NCBI GenBank assembly: GCA_964035545.1
Contig: OZ037767.1
Location: forward strand, 1,127,680-1,191,679
Length of the DNA stretch: 64,000 nt
Reading direction: 5' to 3'
Source of the DNA: Bugula neritina
Lineage: Eukaryota > Animalia > Bryozoa
Under the pieces are notes generated by a model. That model did no database searches and was not told the origin of the DNA. It saw only the letters and a list, made by a program, of their open reading frames with translations. The stretch's first letter is position 1. Each line of letters opens with the position of its first letter. Below, in pieces: positions 16,201 through 31,931 of the stretch. The translations under genes and the position numbers were made by a program.

Positions 16201-19200
16201 AACTAGCAAAGTACTACCCCGAGTTTGATTCCACACTGCAGTAAGTCATAGTCACAAGTATTAACGAGATGTTAACAAGGGACTAGTGCTCATATTATTA
16301 TTGTGAATCGATTGCATTTCTGCAACATTTGATTTGATTTTGCAGAGAGATATTCACAAACACAGAAACTGGAGAAGTAAAAAAGGAAGGAGATACGGTA
16401 GTGTTTACCAAACTAGCTGAAACTTACAGACGTATAGCAGCAGAAGGACCAGAAACTTTCTACAATGGAAGTCTGAGAGACGATATTGTGGCTGATTTAG
16501 AAGAGCTAGGTTAGTAGAAGTTTGTTTTATATTAACTTGAAAGTTTGATGTTACTTATAGATAGTAATAATAATTTAGAACATAATTATATCAGTTATTT
16601 AACAAAAACCCTTACAAAATTAACTAAATATATTCATGTTAAGTAGAAAAGGAAAAGCCTATAGAAAGGGAATATAGATAAAAATTAACAGAAAAATATT
16701 ATTGTATTGTTTTTAGTTTATTCCTCTTTAGCTATACATTATTTCAGTGAGGAGTAAACAATTTATCTCTGAGAATTCTATATTGATGTTTAATGAGATC
16801 TCGTTAGGATGAGTATTTGTAAATAATATATGGATACAAATATGCCAACTGATGTTTATCTAGAATGTTGTTGTTGCAGACGGGCAAATAGTCACAGCAG
16901 AGGATCTTGCTGAATACAGAACAGAATTGCGGGCACCTGTAACAACCACCCTCAAGAATGGAGGATATACAGTTATATCTCCACCACCTCCATCTGCAGG
17001 TCCAGTCTTACAAGGAATACTCAATATCTTAGACGGTAAGTGTTGAAACTACCCAGTGGCCCCTGCGGTGTAACGGTTAGGGCGCCGGTTTACAATTCGG
17101 AGGTTTGAAACCTAGTGGGTACAAATATTTTACAGTAGGAATATATTATGAAAAAACTTTTAAGTTTCTAAATGCAAATTATTAAATTTGTTTAAATTTA
17201 TCTTCAAAATAAAACCTTTCCATTTCAGGATATCACTTCACCGCAGACTCCATCTCGTCTAAAAGAGAGCACATAGAGTCTACAGCCACCACCTACCACC
17301 GTGTGGTGGAGGCAATGAAGTTTGCCTACTCCACTAGAATGGACCTGGGAGATCCAAAATTTTCCGACGTGTCGGAGGTATGTTGTGGAAAATTACCAAA
17401 AGATTGCATGGCTAATCCATCATCTCCTAATCCAGAGCTGCCAAACGCATTTTTAATGGAATATTTTAATGGAGATGATCATTATTAATCCTGCCAGAAT
17501 AAATTATGACAGTAATTTCCTTTTCTTTAATGGTTCAATTTAACTGATCAATGTAGCTTTTTATGTTAACTTAAAACGTCCATTTTTTATTTGGTTATTA
17601 GATAGTTGAGAATTTAACTGACTCCGAATATGGAGCTGAGTTGAGGAGCAGAATATGTGATGACACAACTCACAGTATAGAGTATTACGGAGCCACAACA
17701 GACTCTAGGAAGACAACAGGAACTAGTCAGATATCCGTACTAGCTGGTAACGGAGACGCCGTATCACTCACCACTTCCATCAATGCGTGGTAAGTCCTAC
17801 ACTCATTAGGAGGGAAGGAGTGACAGCTGTAGACAATGCTTGATATGCAGCTTGTAGACATTAGAAGAGTAGTTTTGTTGAACAATTGATATCTTCAATT
17901 TTTTTATATACATACTAAGCAGAAGTGAATAAAAATTGAACTGAGAATCAAAGGAATAGCCCCACTCTAACATTGCTGAAGGCTGATACATTGTCCTAAT
18001 ACAAGTTTCTTATAAATCATAACATCTAAATTTATATCAAGTTGTACCAGTATTTTTCTGTGCACTGTAGCTTCACAAGTTATATTTATCAACGTTCGAT
18101 ACCATTGTACCTAGTAACCTAAAACAGTTTGCATAACCAAGTGCTGGTAGACTTTCGATTATGACAACCCAATGCTTAATTTCTACATCTCACAAAGGTA
18201 AAAATTTGTAATAAAAATTAGTTGCTAAGCAACAAAACATTCACTTCCTATTTTTGCTTTTAATAGCTGGGGATCCAAAAGAATGGGAAAAAGAACGGGT
18301 ATCATATTCAATAACCATATGGATGATTTCTCTATGCCCGGCACACCAAGTTGGACAGAAGACGCGTGGGTAGCGCCATCTAACTCAGCTAATTGGATAG
18401 AACCAGGGAAGAGACCTCTATCAGCCATGTGCCCTTCGATAGTGACAGACTCAAATGAAGATGTCATTTTGGTCACTGGTGGATCAGGGGGAGCACAGAT
18501 TACCACTGCTACAGCTCTGGTACGTATCAACAGCTGAAGTCAAACTGATCGTTAAGTGAATTCATTACTTCTATTAATAACTGTTTGGTTGGAGGAAACT
18601 TAATTCAATTAATTCATATTTCAGACTATGATAAACTACCTGTGGTTTGGTCACAACCTACTAGATTCTGTATCAAAGCCAAGATTACATAATCAGCTTC
18701 TACCCAACACCATATTCTACGAAAAAGGATTCCCAGAGGTGAGCCGCTGCACAGCTATTATAATTTTGACAAAACTTGATTGTTTGTTTGTTTGTTGTAT
18801 TTCATTAAAATAATATCTAGAAAAACATTAAAAGAAGAAATGTCTTTATAGAAAATACTTTACTAAATTGTGTTTATTTAAAATATTAATATTACACAGG
18901 ATAGTTAAGGGCATCCTCCACATAAATATGATGAATTTGTAGTCTCAGTTCTTAATTATTATTTCTCTGTGGGTGGTGTGCGTGTTGCCTACTAATCATA
19001 ATATAGCATGAGGTTTAGCCGTGACCAATATACAGCCACATCTACTAGAGCTGCACCTCTTCGAATTATTATTATTTGTGCAGTCAATGTTGAGTTTGCT
19101 CAGTGTCTGTGGTTAATTATCATCAATTTATCATAGGCTGCATGTATTACAACATGGCATTCTCTTCTCATCAAGTTACAGCTCAATAATAAGCCTACTA

Positions 19201-22200
19201 TTTGGTGATTGAAATTATATCAATTTAAATTATTATGTTTTACCCAGTTGGATTACAAAAGCCCTCAATACTTTTTTAATCTCGTTACCTTTTGGGAAAT
19301 TTTTTCAGAATGGCTATGTAACAAATAATCTAAATTGTACTCTCTTGTAAACTAAGGTTGAGATCATTGACTATTAGCTTTCTATCCATAGATGCCATTG
19401 GCATGACTGTAACACTTTCTGTGAGAGAAGGCAGTTCTAGTTCTACATCTTTTTAATCAAAGCAGCAAATAGTGATGATATGACTCATCAAACACAGTGG
19501 CCCTGCTTAGTAAGGTAGCATTGTGAAAAATACCAATATGAGAAATATAGTATGGTTATGAGTTTACGGCTAATTTCTATCCCAAACATACATATACAAT
19601 GCATATTTTAGATTAAAGTTTTATTTTGCTATCTATACTACAGATTATTCAAAGCTGTTTAGTGTAAGGCAGTGTACTATATTATATTTTAAAGAATCTT
19701 TCTATTGAACGGGGATGCAAGGATGTTTTATGGCCTTGTGACTACATCACTTCATAATCAATTATCTGTTTTAACATTTAACTAGTGTAGTGAAAATAAT
19801 AAATAACATACTGGAGCCACTTGAACCTTGTAAGAAGCTGACTTCAGTGATGGTAGTTTACTTGTTAATTGGTAATTTAACTAGGTTGGTGCGTCTACGC
19901 ACTATAATAGAGGGAATTTAGGAATTTAAGTCATGGGTGCTTAGGTTGAAATATCAAAAATTTTAATTTATATAAAAATAAAAAATGCAAAACTTAAACT
20001 AATGCTAATCAACAATGCTTATATATAAACTTTCCATTATAAAACTTGTTGCCCAAATTTGGAATTAAACCACAGACATTTGGTTTTTAAGCTGATGAGC
20101 TATGACAGTCACATCAAAACTTCTAAATTCTGCCTTAACCCATTGTGGTCATACAATTAGCTAGGGTGCTGTTTTCGATAGCTACAATTAATATTTGCTA
20201 CAGCCAGACCCACACAACCTGTTGTTTTTGTGGTTGCATTACGTAGGAGCAGTTGCTGCTTGGAATTACTAAAATACAAAAATTGCGCCTTTTCTGACTC
20301 AGTGCAGGGTTATTCAGTTCAGTTACAAACAAGATAGCCATGGGGAAAAATTACAATGAGAATCAGTGTGGATTTTTAGCAACAATTTACTTTATACACC
20401 TTAAATCAGGTGCTGAAGTAGAGCATTTCAACAGAGAGTTTAAAGTCACAAAAGGATTAACTGCCAAGGATTTTAGTAGAAAAAGAAAGCAAGCTAGTAG
20501 GCATTTCAATAACGCCCTATCCTACGTTAATAATAATAAGGAGAAAGAAAAAGATAATTTTGTTTCCTATTTCTCATTTCAAAACTTCAAGAAGCTGTCA
20601 GCAGCAAGTAAACTAAAGCACAACTACAATAATTGCCTAGAATGCGCTGAAAACCATAGACCAATGTGGATAATGAAAAGAAGCAACAAATGCCATCTAG
20701 AGACTCCTGCTAAAACTGCTTTGAATTCTTTAAAAGCTGTATTGGACAAGACACCGACTGAGATAACTGCTACTGTGGTGGATGATTTTGTTAGAAATGT
20801 AATAAAACCAGCCACAGAAAAATTAAAAGGAACACCCTTCTCAGCAAAGTTATCTATTGGCTCAAAGCGTAAAGCAGTGACAGTTGACGCAGTCCCTAAG
20901 AAGGTTCGCAGAGCCATCATCAAGTCTGCCAATGATGAAATGAATGATGAAACCACTAATAAAGATTTCATATCACTCTATGCATCTAAGCAATCACAAT
21001 CAGAGTGGGATGTGCAAAGAAAACGATCATTTGGTGAAATGAGGCAAAACAGAAAGAAATCACACACCGGCAGACTAACTGATTATACATTCAATGAAAT
21101 AGTTGTAAAATCAGCTTTAAAAGAAAATGAGGACATAAATTGGTCTGCTCTAAGCAAGTCAGCAAACTTGAAAAATGCCAACAATAAAGCTCCCAGAAAC
21201 GCAGGCCAGGTAAGACTTAATCAAATTGTAACTACTACTGCTAATTACTTTTTTGACAGAGTTACCATTTTTTATTTTAAATATGTTATCTATGCAGAAA
21301 AAGTTTGACAAGATTATCACCATTACTTTATTTCATCTTTGATGGATCTTCCAAAAACATAAATTGCACACACACATAATATATACTGACATATATACAC
21401 ACACATAATATATACTTACATATATACATACGTATACACACATAATATATATGTCATAGAAGTTGAGCAAAAGTAATATTTGCAAATGTAGTACATCTAT
21501 CATCTATGAAACAGGAGTGTATTGACTTGTTTACCAGGTTATGAAAGAAGTCGCAGAACATGTTTTGAAGCATCCTGTACAAAGAAAGCCAAAAACCCGA
21601 ATATCATGGCTAAATTACAAAAATCTCAGTCTAAATATCAAACGAAAAGCTTCTGTAACTAGGCTAAAAATAAAGAAAAAGCGGATGATAGACAACGGAG
21701 AGATTGATGTTGGGAAAGCCATAGTACCAATAGAATACCAGACTGTACAAGTTCAATCAAATGGCACATTGGTAGGTTGATTACTCCTAAAGTCAATAAC
21801 TGAGCTTTTCAGCACACTTGTACTATGTTACAGTAAGTATAAAGGACTGATAATATCATTTCTTACTTTATCTAGTTATTATTTAAAGTATTTGGTATAT
21901 CATTCTTTAATTTTGCAGGTCAAATCTAAAAAAGAGGTATCTGGTAGAAAGTTCTCTCTTCTAAACATACGGAGAGATCATCTCGCCAGAATGGAAAAGC
22001 TGAAGATTTTAAGATCTGCAGCTGACATAGAAAAGATGTCTGTAGTAGATTCACTAGCTTTCCTGGAGAGAAATGGTAGGATTTGAATTAAGTATATCCA
22101 GAGGCTCATTTGTCTTTAAAACTTGTTCTACAAATAAATGATACTGATTTTCTTAACATAATGAACAACATTCTATGACTTTTGAGATTTATGAGCTACA

Positions 22201-25200
22201 TAAATCAAAACTAGCGCTGCAATAGCTATAGAAAACTTTATTTGAACAAAAAAAGATATTTACAGCTAAAATGCTTGCAATGTGGAGCAAGGCTTATCTC
22301 AATATATCCATGCCTTGTGGAAATCAAAGAAGCCTCAAAATTTCTGTCATCTTTTTAGAGATAAGCTTTTTTAGACTAAGACCAAGTAAATTTAGTCAAT
22401 ATTCCAAAGGCCCATTGCTCCGAAGGTGCATTATTCCGAAGGTGCATTATTCCGAAGGTGCATTAGTCTGAAAATTGGTAGATATAGTATTAAATCACTG
22501 AGAATATCATAAATTTTACTCACAATCTTGCTATATTATTGCTAGCTGTGGGTGGCATGCGTGTGGCCTACAAGTTTGTAATTTTTTAGCCTGAAATTAC
22601 GCTATGATGCTGCCTCAATTAAGGGCTGCATCATCTATCAACATTCCACTGTGGATGCTCCATAAACTAAGTACACAGCAAGCTATTCACTAGCCTGTCA
22701 GCTAGCAAGCCTGTAATTAGTAATCTATGCATTAGTTTCTCTTCATCTCCAAGTGTTCACTGAAGTATGAAGTGTTGTGCAAGGGTGATATAATAAGTAT
22801 TTTTATTTCACAGTTTATATAAAAATAACAGCTATAGGCAATGAACTCAAAATATCCAGTTCAATGGCTATAGCGACTGCAATTCTATTCTAGCTACAGT
22901 CAGTCAGCTTATATAGGCCCTTCACACGTTGACTATTAACTGAAAAACTAAATTAAAAAATATTAAAGGAAGCAAACATTTTGGGTCTAGTGTAGTGCAT
23001 TTATGATAAGCTTAGAAAAAGTTTACCTTGTATTTTATAAAAAATAGTTTGCATTTGAAGTTGGCGTCAAAAAATTATTGGTATTGAATGAAATAGTAAA
23101 TTTCTGGCTTGGCAGTTAATTATTTAATATCACATATTTAATCTCTAAAATTATTTGTAAGCTGCTAAACTGCATTATTCTATGCTAGTATTCTTAATAT
23201 CAGTAAATACGAGCATTGGAGACAAAAAATAATAAACATCTTACTCTGAAATTAAATAACCAAAGCTGCACACCAAACCAAACAACCCTACAAGACATGT
23301 AGATGAGGGCAACATTATTAGTATATAAGAGTTCAGGCCCAAATAAAACCTCACCTAACCTAAAATTTGAAAACCATGTTGCAGATCTTCCTGTTGCTCA
23401 GACTATGTTCAATAAATAATTTTAGTTCTAATAATAGTTCTACTAATTTTCGGACTAATGCACCTTCGGAATATTGCCCAGTCCCCCCTAAAACTACCAT
23501 AAAAAATCAGTCTGGAATGCGCAATCACATTGAATGCAATTCTTTAAAATAATTACTATTAAATGTTTAGGGATAGTGGTTGGCAGTATGGACAGCCCCA
23601 AGGAACGCCTTAAAGAAGCCTCGCAAAGTAGACATATGGTTTTGTGGCATGACCATTCAGAAATTGCTGGTAAACATTTATTGATTCATGTATTTTTGTA
23701 CAAAGAAATGTTAGTTACATAATCAAGCTAAGCTGTTCACCAATATATCTTATATGTATTTTTTTCAGGTAAAAGCCACTACTTGTTCATGGTATGGTTT
23801 TTGTACGACCCATGTACATACTATACAGATGGAGAGTTTTCAAAGATGAACTGCAAAGTAAGCTGATAGAATTATGCAAGCTCAATATAGAACACATTTC
23901 AATTAGGGTCATCTTATTTGGATTAAAGTTGCTACAATAAGCCAAGCTCTCACTACAGTATTACAAGTGTCGTTTAGTCTTTGGTAACAGCAATTACTAA
24001 TGACTAGGTGTTTTAAAGAACAAATGTTGAAATACACCAAAATATTCTGAAACATAAATGTTTACTTTATGCTAATTCAAGAAACACCAGTCAATGTACA
24101 ATCAGTGGTGGAATCACCTTACATCTATCTACTTGCCCAATCCAACTCTTCCGTTAAGGATCAACTTCTTTATGTTCCTACTCGACTAGAAGACCTTAGA
24201 GAATTGGAGGAAAAAATTAGCTCAAAAGATGGACGAACATTTACTGACAAACTAAGATTTTTTTCTGGTGATAGTCCAGCAAGGCAACTAGAAGCTGGGC
24301 AGCAATGTGGAGGTAAGAGTGATAAACTATAAATTGTTTACACAGGATGAAATACAAGATAGCTTTTGCTACAATAATAACAATACGTGTTTGACTTATT
24401 CCATGTATAAATTCCCCAAAAAGAATACATATTTACAAGAAACTATATTATTTATGATGAAACTTGATAAAAACATGCATATGTATGTTCAGGAATGTTC
24501 CCATGTATGTGTGGCACCCAAGACATTTACTTCAGTAACACTAGCAAATATAGCCAAGAAGGAGCTTTCTATAGTTCACAAGACCGCCTTCAGCTGCTCC
24601 ATAAGACAAAAACATGGGAAGATGGTTTTACTAAAGGGAACCTAGCAGTCTTTCAGACAATGAAGGTATGAAATTAAGCTGAGTTATAAATAAACACTGG
24701 TTGGGAGAAACGGCACTTCCATGTAATACATTTATATATGAGCAGCAATAATTACACTTTTTCAGACTGAAGGGCTCAGGAATGAATTGTTTCACAGAGG
24801 GGTTGCCTATTCAAGTGCAGAGAACATTTCAGGGCTAAGAAGAATTTTGAATGTTAGCCTAAAAGGTCAGAAAATTTAGAATGATAAGTTTAAACTATAT
24901 GTGGTTACAGCGTTGTCGGATGAGATACATAGAAAAAATATGGGCTGCATGAAGCCATAGTAACATAGAATAAATCTTCATCCAATCTTAGTTTTGCATC
25001 TAGTGAAAGTAGCGATTCATTGTTATGTATAGACCCACACAAGCTACAGTGGGTGCACACATGTATATATAATCTTTATGAAAAACTTAGTTACGAATAT
25101 AACTTAAGCCTCACATAAGTTTCTAAATACCTACTTTACAGGTGTGAAAAGGCCTCCTGCTCTTCTTTGTACTAAGCTGGAATCACAGATCGATATAGGC

Positions 25201-28200
25201 AGCTACGAAATTTCATCAATAGAACCATTACATGATCTAAAAAATGTTATCAACAAAATTTTAAAAGAACTACCTAAAGCTGCAAAGAATAAAGAACTCA
25301 AGGAAAAATTGACCAATCTTGTTTCAGACATTGAAGGTGAGTAGAGATTCTAACTTGCTAGTAGAAATTGCTAACACACATTTTCAATATTGTCTATATC
25401 AAAATTAAATAGCCATTTCAAAAACAATTATAAACCTATACAAACATGAATTATAGCTCAAAATAGAGAAATGAAGGGAACAGAATGCCGGCTTAATTTG
25501 GTAAAAGTTACCATCATGCTACAAGATTTCCAGCACACTGAAGATGGGAGAGCCATGTACGTTATGCTAGCAGCATTGACAGAGCTGCAAAGTTTGGCAT
25601 ACATGTGTGACACTAATAGATGTCCTAGAACAATCCTCAGGGCATATAATCAAAGTTTTCTTTTTGCCATTAAGTGCATGGAACTATTTGAAAACCCAGA
25701 AACTTGCACCAAGCGCGCTATGTTTGGGATGCCCTTCCATTGCCTTTCAGTGCACTTGCCTGAAACATTGAGACTTGTTTCAGGCAGATCATTAGTAGCC
25801 GAACACGCTGAAAGGCACTTTTATAAACTAAGGTGCGTACTAAAAAATAATACTAGTACAACAGGAATTTATGCAAAGTTTGTCCACTCACTTGAAAATG
25901 AATGCAAATAGCTTACTATAGGGGTGCTGTAGAAAGAACTCAGACCTATTTAAATTCAGCCCTGATAATATTACTGTGATCTATGAAAACAGTATTGTTT
26001 TAGGGAACTAACGCTGAGGTGCTCCAATAGAAAATCGCAAAGTATTATAGCAAGTGCTATGTTTAGAATAGTGGTAGAAAGAAAGGCTGCTGATGATGCC
26101 ATTACCAGCTACGGCAGACAGGAGCACACTATCTCCAATGCATGTAGTGGCCTTAGCCTAGGACACCACACCATATTCTCAAACAAGTAGGTCACTGTCT
26201 GATAAGTAAGAATAGTAGCTACTTTGTTGTGTATGATATTGCTACTAAACACAGGCAAATATGCTACTTAAAAGTCTATCACTATCTTTACACTAGTTTC
26301 CTCAAAGCTCATAGGACAGCAACACTTCACCATTTCCGACGAATTGCTGACTTTCTAGAAATTGGAGAAGGAGTTTGGTTCAAGGTACATGATGGGGGAG
26401 TAGAGTTCAAGGATGGAAAAAACTGCCCAGACAACTACAATTCAGGGCCAATATTAACTCATTTCAGGTAAATATCTTAACTACCTATATACCACTATAC
26501 ATCATATATTGTATATATCATACAACAAAAGTAGACTGTTTCTTCCTAAAAATTAATCAAAGAAAATAAAATTAATTAAAGAAAATAAGCTTCCACTTGA
26601 AGAAAATTAAATGGAAATTCTTTACAACTTGAATCTAAATTGCATGTCCTAGCTTGAAAAAAATTGCATACAAAATTTGAACAGCTACTATCTAATTTTT
26701 ATTAATTCTAAGCAGTACGTTTTATTTAACATATTTGGTAACCACCAGAAAATTTTTTGTTAGATCGAGAAACATGAAAGACATTAACAACATGCTGAAG
26801 ACAAGCTGGGAGTTTTGCATCAGAAATAAAAACTCATTAAAAATTCCACTTTTGTGTGACATGCTGACAGATAAGAAGACAGCTGATAAGCAAGGTAAAA
26901 TATTCTTTTGAAATATATATATATATACACACACACACACATATATATATATATAGTTATTTATATGTTAATTACAAGCAATTTGAAAAATGAGCAATAA
27001 TTTTCTTCTGCCTAAAATGTCTATTGATAAAATTTTAACAGTGTCAAGAAAATATGAAGAAATCAAGCCTGCTATAAGCAATGTGTTGAGGAGTTTGGCA
27101 GAGGACAAGCATAAAGAAGTAGAGAACTCTATTGCTGTTTCTGCATCCAATACCTTGAATGAAACAGATGAGAAGCTTGATGAATCTTCATATGTGTGTG
27201 CTGTACCATTGTTGACACAATGTAAGTAATTTTAGATGCTGCCTCCCAATTTTAAAATTACTTATCAAGTTGAAATACATCAAATACACTGAGAAAAAAT
27301 TATTTTAAATTGGCAGGCCAGACAGAGGTACCAAGCATTTTGCCTAAGAAACTTCAACAAAAGAACACAGTTACTGGTACGTTGCTTTAAGTATGGTTAT
27401 CATACACATATAACATACTTATTTTCAGTAACATAAGTTATAGTCATTTAGATTTAGAAAATAGAACCATGCAGCTACTATAATGACTTCAGGGCAGCCA
27501 ATGCACTCACATGTAATCTGAAATAATTAGAATCACCCTGGTGTTTTACAGCATATATTTCTGCCCACCTTACTTGCAATCAGTTGTTTTTCAATTTTAG
27601 ATGCTATGAGGAGTCTATGGCCTTACAGTAAAACGATTTTAGAAAGCTTTCTTTCAGCTAAACACCGGTTTAAACAACATAACTCTTGCGTTAATAAATT
27701 AATGTTGAAATCTGCAAGCCTTAAAGTAAAGCCATATTTCTTGAAATTTGTTAAAATATTAGAGGAAGAAGAAAAAGCAAAAACCATAAGCAAGTTCAGA
27801 GATAGAGGACTGATTTCTATGGAAAGTAACTCAGAAGACAATTGGAAGATTAAAATTATTAATTATTGGTTGAATCAAATTAATGAGTTTCTATAATAAA
27901 ATTATTCGCATCCTTTTTTTCTATTTTTTTTTCTAACTTTAAGAAAAATAAACCTAAAGGTGAAACCAAATCAATATCAAAAGATGAAACTATTTTTTCT
28001 GAAGTGTAATTCAACATCACTAAACATGTTTGTTCTAGTTCAACATCATTATGATTAATATTATGACATGAGTCTTACAGTTAGTGTTATTGATACTCAT
28101 ACTGATACTCAGTCTCATGTCGATACTCAGTCTCATGTCGATACTCATAGCTGATGACTTTTATTAGATACGTCATTGCCAGTAACAAAATGAATACAAA

Positions 28201-31200
28201 TATATAAAAAATTTAATGAATAATAATTATAATAATAATATACATTATATTAAATTAAAATAATACTAATAGTAATAGTAAATAATAAAAAATTATTATT
28301 AAAAATTACTAATATATTACTATTAGTATTAGCCGTAATACTAATACTAATAACTATAAGATCATCACTATGAATATTATGTGAGTATTTGCTGAAAAAT
28401 TTACTTACCCTGTCCCGCAAAAAATACTTTCACTGTTGTATAATTCCAATCTCAGTTTGTCACTTGGAGAGTGAGAATAATATGAACACGCAGACAGTAC
28501 CCAGCTATCGCACTTTGTACACTGTATAGGCAGGGATGTAGTGGTACCCATACGGTCCCATACGCCGTATGGCCTAGAAGAAAATAGGCTGTTCTTGGCC
28601 ATACGCCCGTATGGGCATATTTTTGAAAGATGATTAGTGCACAGGATAGTTAGGGCATCCTCACTGAGAATATTATCATAAATTTCGCTCACAATCTAGT
28701 TTAGGTTCTTGTTATGTTAATGCTATGTGGGTGGCATGCGTGTTGCCTACTTGTGATTGTTTAGCTTGAGATTACACTATGAATAATATGCAGCTATCAA
28801 CATTCCATCTTCTCATCTCTCCATGTTCATTGAAGCGCGAAGTGCTGTGCATTGGTGATTACTAAGGAAAAAATTTTCATTTTCAGTGTATAAATCACTA
28901 ATTTGTAGAAAATCTATGGAGGCTATTGAAAAGATAAAAATACATGCTATGCATAAATTTCTCAGGTTTCCGACAGTGTTGGTTTTATTCGAATACCATG
29001 CTTTCCTGCTGAGATATTTGGCAGGGATTGAAAAATAAACTTCTCAAGTAAAATTGGCTAAAAATGAGTAGATTTTTGTCTACAACTTTGCAATAAAAAA
29101 ATTGAAAACTCGAAAATGCAGGTGCTCTGAGGAAGATCTAAAATTTTAATTCTAGGCTTTCTAGCACAATTAAGTATACGATTTTATTTTGCGGGATTGA
29201 ATTCTTATAATATACTAATAATTAATGTGGCCTCAGCAAGGCAGTGACAGCTAGAAAGTTGCCCTTAGCTATCTTGTGTGGACTTGAATTTTGTCAATAA
29301 GCAATGAAATTTGGAAAAAAACCAACATGAAATCCAGAAATAAAATCAAAATGTCTTCAGGAAACAGTACCAGGTGTGTAGGAGAGGTTAATGAAAATTT
29401 ATCACTGAGGTCTACAGGTACTATATCCACATTTTGGTCAAAAACCTAGCAGCGTTATTGCATGTTCATGTTAATGATTTTTTTTGCAAACTGTATACCG
29501 CCATAAGTAACCTTTTATGTCTGGTTGTACTAACGTCTGGCTTTACATTTAATCATCTTCTAGAATCTAGGCTAACACATATTAAACCTGTCAAATTTGT
29601 TCTTTTGGGGTATATTTCTTTGATGTGTCTAGTGGAAGCTCAGGGGTTTTACTTTAAAACCAAGTTAACATACTCTTCTTTGGTGTGTTTTATTGTGTGC
29701 AAGGAGGTGTGGTGGTATCTCCCTATGGATTAGACTAGTGCTCTAATAAACTCCAAATAGGTTTTCTACCAATTTCTGCTTGCCAATGAGATATCAATTC
29801 AAATTGCTTTTTCTGATTTGCAATCTTCCTCTGTTCTGATAAATAATTCTTTTTCTGTCCACGTCAGTGTATTAAATATTTGAAGTAATCAGGTTGCATT
29901 TGGAGAGCACTTGTTACCTGCCTCTATCCTCCCATTTTTTTGAGATCTTCAGCAATATTTCTGTACAGGTTGGACTTAGTGTCAGTTGAGTAAGACTACA
30001 TTTAAAATTACAGTCAACAGGTATGGCACAATACTGAATATTTATATAGTTTGCAGCAATGCACAGACGTCGTGTAGCTGGTATGGCATGAAAATAATAG
30101 CAAGGTGCACATTTCAACACAGATTTTTTTCAGAAGAATTATAATTCACAATGGCTTTGAATTGCATAAATTTACATCAGAAGGGCTTCGGCGGCGGGGC
30201 GCTGCCCCGGACCCCGCCGGGGGCCTGGGCGGCCCCCTGGACCCCGGCCTGAGAGTATGGCCATGAATATTTTTACCACTACATCCCTGTGTATAGGTCG
30301 CGAATAATGAGCCAATGTAATGGATTCTCATCCTCATTATTATAATTACTGTTGCGTATGTTTTGAATGCTGTAATTGTAGCTAAGTTGGGCTAGCTTTC
30401 TAATGCCTTATTATTGTGATTGTTGTTAAAGCTTTCAGTATAATGTAATTTTCATGAAATACGCATTCCAGAGTTATTTCCTCTTTTTGCTATTTTATCG
30501 TTTTGCATTAATACTGATACTGGAAATTTGTGTGGCTTTTATGAATACCTTCAATACATAGGTTGGCCTATTGAATTATTCGTTTTCCTTTGTCTACTTT
30601 TCTTTTGTTTCTGTCAAGCTTAACTTTCTTTTGTCTGTTGGAACATTCTAGATGTGAATTCTTGTGTATAAAAGCAGGCGAATTTCCAGTATAGTTCAGA
30701 CTACTACTGGAGCTCGCTGGTAGTTGGGCCCTAAGCTGTATCTGATACAATAAAGGTTATCCTTATTTGTACTCAAATACTTGGCTTATTCTCTCTACCA
30801 CAAAGAGTATGTTCAGGCACTAGTTGCATTCATAACCCACAGTTTACTACACCATAAATACAGCAATTTGCTTGAAGTCTCAGTATGTTCAGGAGTGGAT
30901 GTTTCATATTTTATAACCCCCCCCCCCATTCAATATATAAACTCCCCATTCTAATTTTTTACTTTTGCGTTGTATTTACATGAATTATATTACGTTATTT
31001 AATTAATAATAGTTTAAGAAATATGCTGCAATTTTAGATAAAGTTACTTTTTCTAAATTAGGTTATTGTTTACTTCTCCCCCTAGCGTCACGACATCCTA
31101 CGCGCTCTTTTGACATTAGTACAATCACGCATTCAAAGCTTATCATAACATTGTCAACATTGCATTGCATAAGCAGAGAGCTAGTAGCTAGTAACTAGTA

Positions 31201-31931
31201 ATAAGTGCGTTGGTGTCTTCTCACCTCTACGTGTTCAACGAAGCGCGAAGTGATGCGCACTGCTAATTCCTCAGGGAAAAATATAGCATTTTCAGTGTAT
31301 AAATCACTAATTTATGAGAAATCTAGTAAGGTTATTGAAAAAATAAAAAAACTTACACTGGAGAAATATCTCAGGATTCCAACCGTGCAATTTTTATTCA
31401 GATATCATGTTTTACTGCTGAGATATTTTACTGGTACTGAAAAGTCAGCTTTTCAGCCAAAATTGGCCAAAATTGGGCAGTTTTTTGTCTATAACTTTGC
31501 AAAAAAAGTGAAAATTGAAAATTCCAAAAAAGTTGCACTGAAGAAAAAGAAGATCTACAACATAGTTTTTAAATTTTGGCTCTAGCACAATTAGGGGAGA
31601 TTTTATTTTACTGGTACTGAATTCTTATATGATTACAATGCAAACCTCAGTGAGGCAGTTGCAGCTAAAAGGTTGCCCTTAACTATCCTGTGTAATTCCT
31701 CGTGGAAACATAGTAGCTTGATAACCCTTGCTCTTTAAATATCTATCTTTAATAGACCAGCTGAGCAACTTGTATTTAATATTTTAGGAATATTTGGAAG
31801 AACTAGAAAAGAAGAAACACAAACTCACGCCAATCAGTTTTCCGCCAGTTACAGAGTCGGTCTGCTCGCACAACGGAGCCATCTTTGGTGTCGGTGACTT
31901 CAGGAGGTTAGGAGGAGCTGATGGTTTTTAA
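13203..31931 (+). CDS. GGT: Gamma-glutamyl transpeptidase / glutathione hydrolase (multi-exon)
   Basis: Exons encode GGSAVDAAIA, SGIGGGGFM, DYRETAP, IAVPGE, GT-SQISV (autocleavage Thr), NNHMDDFS, PGKRPLSAM, GGSGG, PRLHNQLLP; last exon 31788-31931 (..GDFRRLGGADGF*) joins the phase-0 donor at 18738; first exon 13203-13239 is tentative. Confidence 0.9.
17056..17130 (+). mobile_element. tRNA-derived SINE-like fragment in a GGT intron
   Basis: GTGGCCCCTGCGGTGTAACGGTTAGGGCGCC head, similar to the copy at 59395. Confidence 0.5.
20340..27896 (+). CDS. 16-exon divergent DDE transposase, ~1181 aa (CMC/Transib/RAG1-type core)
   Basis: Exons 20340-21209, 21538-21771, 21919-22075, 23571-23669, 23769-23857, 24081-24312, 24493-24665, 24766-24865, 25142-25336, 25457-25832, 26004-26186, 26297-26467, 26764-26894, 27042-27221, 27317-27376, 27601-27896 sum to 3546 nt in one frame; motifs WHD, FSGDSPAR..GG.FPCxC, IEPLHD, MKGTECR, FHxxxxH, AEHAER; exon-6 acceptor is AA, not AG. 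Confidence 0.8.
22397..23476. mobile_element. Non-autonomous inverted-repeat element in transposase intron 3
   Basis: CCGAAGGTGCATTAGTCTGAAAATTGGTAG (ends 22481) is inverted at 23440-23469; left arm has tandem 16-bp ATTCCGAAGGTGCATT units; exact termini and TSD not resolved. Confidence 0.6.
22496..22790 (+). mobile_element. Degenerate internal fragment of the CACAGG MITE family
   Basis: Shares CACTGAGAATAT.., GTGGGTGGCATGCGTGT.GCCTAC and CTATCAACATTCCA blocks with 28640-29278. Confidence 0.7.
28531..30289. mobile_element. Non-autonomous hAT-type element
   Basis: 16-bp TIR CAGGGATGTAGTGGTA / TACCACTACATCCCTG; perfect 8-bp TSD TGTATAGG (28523-28530, 30290-30297); subterminal CCATACG/CGTATGG repeats and a GC-rich tract at about 30183-30250. 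Confidence 0.92.
28640..29278 (+). mobile_element. 639-bp MITE of the CACAGG family, nested in the hAT
   Basis: CACAGGATAGTT-AGGGCATCC ... TTGCCCTTAGCTATCTTGTG; 2-bp TSD TG|...|TG; left part resembles 18895-19020 and right part resembles 31218-31692. Confidence 0.88.

Follow-up and report, generated by a model that had tools for sequence, protein, structure and literature searches.

The window analysed here is a 64,000-nucleotide stretch of the genome of the bryozoan Bugula neritina (GCA_964035545.1, contig OZ037767.1, positions 1,127,680–1,191,679 of the forward strand; positions below are counted from its first letter), in which the last intron of a host gamma-glutamyltranspeptidase (GGT) gene is occupied by a 12.8-kb DNA transposon (Table 1). 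Removal of this element together with one TA restores an intron of 249 bp with GT..AG borders (18739–31787), the length that the initial annotation, a reading of the bare sequence, had proposed, and the last GGT exon then follows in frame. The element is bounded by 19-bp terminal inverted repeats (TIRs) that are perfect, start with CACAG and carry TA on both sides, again as first described, and it encodes a single long protein, a transposase of 1,181 amino acids (aa). It is very probably a recently active, one-gene member of the CMCT clade of transposons, and one that stands for a distinct marine-invertebrate lineage characterized by its own TIR box, a target-site duplication (TSD) of 2 bp and a zinc domain with a SAP-like insert. 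The CMCT clade comprises EnSpm/CACTA, Mirage, Chapaev, Transib, Plavaka, ESTA, Lanisha and RAG1 (Kojima 2025, PMC12730594).

A search of the 216-Mb genome with the TIR gives 316 matches in forward orientation and 312 in reverse, against none for a reversed control. About 300 elements share the TIR, the majority of them 756-bp miniature inverted-repeat transposable elements (MITEs). When TSD lengths were tabulated over the copies, a duplication of 2 bp was found in 41 of the 44 distinct paired elements, with 6.8 expected. The 2-bp length given in the initial annotation therefore stands, but TA is not specific to the family: the 41 duplications read TA in 11 cases, AA in 9, AT, TT, AC and TG in 4 each and five other dinucleotides once each, so that the family TSD is any 2 bp, A/T-biased, with TA not fixed. 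Five more long copies, 10,280–11,027 bp in length, are scattered over unrelated sites and have the TSDs AT, AA, TA, TA and AG; four of them are 99.1–99.3% identical to the window copy and one is 95% identical, and two are 100% identical to one another. In a sister family, whose element measures 12,442 bp, the TIR is related and the duplication reads TT. The CACAG element is a genuine, recently mobile transposon. There is next to no chance that its left and right ends are unconnected half-MITEs that happen to enclose a domesticated host gene. MITE ends are very abundant in this genome and 15 introns are unusual in a transposase, yet this explanation is ruled out by the five complete copies elsewhere, which occupy unrelated sites, agree in both ends and interior, and are each flanked by a separate 2-bp TSD. 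The 756-bp MITEs resemble the long element in the TIR and, with 90% identity, along some 476 bp at the right end, whereas the left interior of the long element departs from MITE sequence after about 24 bases; moreover, related TIRs flank transposase homologues elsewhere. As a separate observation, many MITE copies and both sister-family copies (loci L010–L025, L039–L045, L070 and L073) are flanked by satellite-like arrays with ATACTG-type units, which might reflect target bias or clustering.

The transposase gene spans 20340–27896 and consists of 16 exons on the plus strand, a model already put forward in the initial annotation. Public contigs join the flanking exons across GT..AG borders at 11 of the 12 introns of the stretch that they cover (introns 1 and 2 lie outside it), and in one of them the letters of exon 3 directly abut those of exon 4. 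Frames of 1,179–1,183 aa are open in all six long copies. Between the two most distant copies, divergence is 2.9% in exons and 5.4% in introns, and 48 codons differ synonymously against 50 with a replacement, a pattern indicative of purifying selection on the transposase sequence. Over 64 homologues, D448, D547, E835, a Cys pair and H-x4-H are conserved at 97–100%; the Cys pair is C-x-C, as in the window protein, in 27 of 41 homologues and C-x2-C in 14. The N terminus of the homologue alignment shows a conserved Cys followed by H-x4-C-x2-C and no Chapa/NZD pattern, and the predicted model of exon 1 gave no structural match above Z 6, which is weak evidence.

Exon 10 alone retrieves 420 relatives among 50%-identity representatives. 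The hosts are molluscs, cnidarians, amphioxus and a hemichordate, and the named homologues, all of them animal, come from bivalves, amphioxus, Ptychodera, Nematostella and Actinostola and are entered as uncharacterised proteins, just as it had been anticipated that gene annotators would label this gene. By sequence, no member of the family matches any Pfam transposase family. None of the 64 family members matches the Pfam models Transposase_21, DUF4218, Plavaka or RAG1 at E 0.05, a result to be read with the caveat that divergent animal EnSpm elements may also escape Transposase_21 (11–15% of members match in two Atlas clusters). Single-exon Pfam searches gave no match, searches of PDB sequences gave SAP-domain matches and no transposase, and the family profile found no RAG1, BbRAG1L or HzTransib chain in the PDB at E 10. 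Profile searches of the Bugula genome with PF02992 and PF12940 were blank, as were their control searches. The sole recurrent Pfam domain in the family is SAP, located within the zinc-binding insertion. In a tree built by a quick method within the homologue set, with no outgroup, the window protein sits on a long, unresolved branch. Near-identical clusters of partial transposases occur among the homologues (P0022, P0207–P0211, P0177 and P0195–P0200; 494–497 aa in Nematostella, and 634 aa) and may be young deleted copies or domesticated forms. A seeming 2,849-aa neighbour of one homologue was discarded as a tandem repeat.

RAG1 is the protein that shuffles antibody genes, and it is in three dimensions that its relationship to the present family emerges. 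The predicted structure of the scallop homologue P0031 (mean predicted local distance difference test score, pLDDT, of 83) has the RAG1 core as its best match in the PDB (Foldseek E value of 2e-9, Z of 17.6, 4.3 Å over 459 residues with 13% identity), followed by HzTransib (Z 14.4), BbRAG1L (Z 14.1) and the P element (Z 11.2). Predicted EnSpm and Plavaka structures superimpose on P0031 with template-modelling (TM) scores, normalized by target, of 0.55–0.61, below two unnamed cnidarian clusters. The transposase is accordingly predicted to have a RAG1-type catalytic fold with placement in the CMCT clade; these data place the family within the clade without demonstrating that RAG1 is a nearer relative of it than EnSpm.

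Related elements are also delimited by their ends in other genomes. Assembly ERZ25069764 holds two complete 6.6-kb elements, each with one transposase gene and perfect TIRs starting CTCAGG, flanked by TA and AA duplications; the transposase of one of them (L089) is intronless and 1,283 aa long. The box C[ATG]CAG[GC]N4TTAAGG is found beside homologues in four other genomes, including upstream of a Mytilus homologue and downstream of one in ERZ21784910, such a box being present in 1.2% of shuffled loci. Ends of the foreign relatives start with CT or CG, and four other homologue loci that were examined have no TIR. Judged from these sequences, the lineage is defined across distant hosts by its protein, its TIR box and its 2-bp TSD. 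Several candidates met along the way were set aside: 'convergent genes' next to an ERZ25069764 copy are satellite outside the TIR, what looked like paired CAC TIRs in L077 and in L084 is due to chance, and a DUF6589 transposase near a foreign relative is unrelated. At L090:14966–19105, DUF6589 transposase fragments face DEAD/Helicase_C frames within an insertion in a copy of a foreign relative, an arrangement that we take to be AcademH-like. In Mytilus edulis (L085:7423–7660), the left TIR comes straight after exon 1 of a Myb/SANT-like gene (PF13873); this gene was rejected as part of the element, as it starts upstream of the TIR and resembles an interrupted host gene.

The right arm of the element contains no long frame. 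On its minus strand, convergent with the transposase gene, lies a 46-aa PHD-like fragment, which with a nested insertion removed reads I-Q-C-x2-C-x2-W-x-(Pro or Leu)-x2-C. It is on this fragment that the initial annotation had built a ProtoRAG-like, two-gene layout pairing the transposase with a chromatin-reader partner. The half motif on the minus strand is indeed present, but its match to Pfam PHD (E 0.018) is below the cut-off. The fragment is probably a real PHD relic, because the motif seldom arises in simulations (2 of 2,000, for a pattern set after the motif had been seen). It nevertheless seems improbable to us that the element has, or had until recently, a convergent PHD accessory gene with a RAG2-like role in directing or regulating the transposase. 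The convergent position of the fragment, a GTAAGT donor after it and the occurrence of the half motif above chance would suit such a gene, as would the homologous DNA retained in a relative at 21.81 Mb of C4, where the PHD-like region is kept at 68–70% identity compared with 85% for the last coding exon. This relative (G000:C4:21812846–21820760, minus strand) is 86% identical at the aa level in part of exon 10, and its last exon is apparently in three tandem pieces. Other diverged relatives in this genome are located at C5:6.92 Mb, C2:7.69 Mb, C2:20.95 Mb and C1:12.53 Mb. In the Bugula copies themselves, however, the zinc His of the motif is replaced, by Pro in four copies and by Leu in the window copy, a solo long terminal repeat (LTR) adjoins the fragment directly upstream in five copies, and the sixth has a stop and has lost one Cys. 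Divergence of the PHD-like segment (6.1%) equals the intron rate, and no splice joint is listed over this region in the public contigs. The sister family carries a motif C-x-C-x3-W-x-H-x2-C 1.9 kb past its transposase stop (L069:6877–7077) that is rare by chance, but it lies on the opposite, plus strand and has no Pfam match. No kelch or RAG2-like sequence was seen, and the foreign elements defined by TIRs contain no PHD sequence. Only one PHD downstream of a homologue is intact, and it forms part of an 833-aa frame of Branchiostoma lanceolatum (L093:14816–17314, minus strand) with PHD, coiled-coil and GDSL-esterase parts, of the type of the first open reading frame (ORF1) of long interspersed nuclear elements (LINEs), a common source of such debris; PHD–esterase frames are typical of CR1/L2 ORF1 (PMC4120745). 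This amphioxus PHD was rejected as a partner, being LINE-ORF1-like and showing no alignment with the 46-aa fragment, and it makes retrotransposon debris a plausible source of the latter. The PHD piece is best explained as a passenger relic, and as neither a functional gene nor a second subunit; neither the second gene, nor the ProtoRAG-like layout, nor a working chromatin-reader partner is upheld. That this is an unnamed RAG1-fold lineage spanning phyla and ranking with ESTA, Plavaka or Lanisha, and that its branch in this host at one time acquired a convergent PHD gene in an event separate from that of RAG2, is a combination that we consider very unlikely.

The one-gene element that remains shares the hallmarks of the CMCT clade: 5'-CA..TG-3' termini, which occur in most cases, a TSD within the 2–5-bp range, a DDE core with C(2)C and H(3–4)H placed after the second D and before the E, here as C-x-C and H-x4-H, and, in the homologue model, the RAG1-type catalytic fold. 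The original assignment to CAC-ended, CMC-related cut-and-paste transposons is borne out by the 2-bp TSD, the divergent DDE/zinc core and this fold. The family differs from the clade's members in having no sequence match to any modelled family, in the predominance of C-x-C over C-x2-C, in the SAP-like insert and in its TIR box. It probably works like RAG1 and Transib and is a member of neither. With RAG1 and ProtoRAG it shares the CAC terminus and its best structural match, but identity is 13%, the TSD is 2 bp instead of 5 bp, and there is no RING or NZD signature; RAGL elements also possess a convergent RAG1L–RAG2L pair with kelch and PHD, of which only the 46-aa fragment could be a counterpart. 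RAGL/ProtoRAG elements have a 5-bp TSD and AAA at TIR positions 8–10 (PMC7204232), and the latter is absent from the window TIR. Transib resembles the family in its single transposase gene, CAC terminus and, by the homologue model, fold, but differs in TSD, in length (about 480 aa in solved chains against 1,181 aa) and in the lack of a sequence match; its TSD is canonically 5 bp, if labile (bioRxiv 2026.08.26.747230). Chapaev and Chapaev3 likewise have CAC ends, animal hosts and a long N-terminal extension with Cys and His residues; the two-zinc Chapa/NZD pattern of Chapaev (PMC4411706) is not found, Cys10 and H-x4-C-x2-C alone being present. Comparison with animal EnSpm reveals similar predicted folds and no Transposase_21 or DUF4218 match. 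Both animal EnSpm and Mirage have CAC ends and a 2-bp TSD.

It is possible, though we would stop short of calling it probable, that the same mechanism belongs to a lineage already named in Repbase or Dfam, such as that of Lanisha in animals (Lanisha-2_StPi of a coral) or the long-branch EnSpm-1/2_NV of Nematostella. Both are deep, isolated branches in the CMCT tree (PMC12730594), and the present family has members in Nematostella and other cnidarians. Lanisha of moss, an element of 10–12 kb with 35–40-bp TIRs, 5–8 ORFs and plant homologues (Carey et al. 2021, PMC8245031), was recognised only through profile similarity to RAG1 (PMC8245031). The Bugula element is of like size and its likeness to RAG1 is similarly apparent by profile or structure only, but it has 19-bp TIRs, one gene and named homologues from animals alone, in contrast to the moss elements; the failure of all 64 members to match Transposase_21, DUF4218, Plavaka or RAG1 also speaks against a named family. 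On balance we lean slightly towards an unnamed lineage of RAG1-fold transposons with no partner gene. Weighing against the one-gene CMCT reading, besides the rarity by chance of the PHD half motif (a pattern chosen post hoc), the sister-family motif and the region kept in the C4 relative, all mentioned above, are the facts that the folded protein is a homologue 35% identical to the window protein in its core, that the RNA origin of the contigs with splice joints is only guessed, that the Pinctada homologue has 19-bp TIRs on both sides with non-matching flanks (AT and TA), and that an empty site was looked for in this assembly and none found.

By analogy with RAG1 and Transib, the transposase would bind both 19-bp TIRs and synapse the ends, and excision would probably follow the nick-and-flanking-hairpin route of these enzymes. 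The ends would then be joined to an A/T-rich target with a 2-base stagger, the repair of which would yield the 2-bp TSD. Intact copies elsewhere could mobilise in trans the approximately 300 TIR-sharing elements, mostly 756-bp MITEs, for which an autonomous partner is thereby identified. The window copy probably inserted into the last GGT intron first and acquired its nested insertion and lost a splice acceptor afterwards. To our knowledge, few active RAG1-fold relatives are known, and solved structures among the matched ones are restricted to RAG, ProtoRAG and Transib. Intact, spliced and near-identical copies with a 2-bp TSD, as opposed to the 5 bp of RAG, offer a test of how the same catalytic core spaces strand transfer, and the family adds a branch for rooting the Transib/RAG/CMC tree. 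Hundreds of 'uncharacterised' mollusc, cnidarian, amphioxus and hemichordate proteins would be explained as transposases, which the TIR box helps to find. No new RAG1/RAG2-like two-gene system is added.

Table 1. Features of the CACAG element and its host locus, in window positions.
Feature	Position	Strand	Remark
Host GGT, penultimate exon	18625–18738	+	PF01019, E 2e-7
Left TSD copy (TA)	18893–18894	.	2-bp TSD is the family rule
Left 19-bp TIR	18895–18913	+	Lineage box C[ATG]CAG[GC]N4TTAAGG
Exon 1	20340–21209	+	N-terminal helical region; Cys10 and H-x4-C-x2-C (aa 94–102), putative zinc site
Exons 2–3	21538–22075	+	21538–21771, 21919–22075
Older insertion in intron 3	22397–23477	.	Bounded by inverted repeats; present in other long copies
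Exons 4–6	23571–24312	+	First catalytic Asp D448 (23651–23653, WHDHS); second Asp D547 (24270–24272, GDSPAR)
Broken intron-5 acceptor, AA	24079–24080	+	AG in five other copies
Exons 7–9	24493–25336	+	Zinc C-x-C (C565, C567), SAP-like insert, EPLHD motif
Exon 10	25457–25832	+	Zinc H811-x4-H816; catalytic Glu E835 (25810–25812)
Exons 11–16	26004–27896	+	26004–26186, 26297–26467, 26764–26894, 27042–27221, 27317–27376, 27601–27896 with stop
PHD-like fragment, 46 aa	28408–30312	-	Split by nested insertion (pieces 30312–30298, 28530–28408)
Nested 1,759-bp TIR element	28531–30289	.	CAGGG ends, 8-bp TSD; private to window copy
639-bp MITE of CACAG family	28640–29278	+	TSD TG; within nested element
Solo LTR (TG..CA)	30316–30851	+	Just upstream of PHD-like fragment
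Right 19-bp TIR	31674–31692	-	
Right TSD copy (TA)	31693–31694	.	
Host GGT, last coding exon	31788–31928	+	In frame with preceding exon

The 12.8 kb first reported is the true span of this copy and not the size of the family unit, which is about 11 kb; the window copy is longer because a 1,759-bp nested element, with its 8-bp TSD, has inserted into it. This nested element is hAT-like, judged by the length of its TSD. The window copy is itself probably defective, since the acceptor of its intron 5 is AA in place of the AG present in the five others. The insertion in intron 3 contains a decayed left end of the CACAG family's own MITE; it also displays 16-bp subterminal tandem units whose number varies among the long copies. 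The solo LTR is missing from the 95%-identical copy and belongs to an abundant family, paired LTRs of which stand about 6.8 kb apart at many sites.

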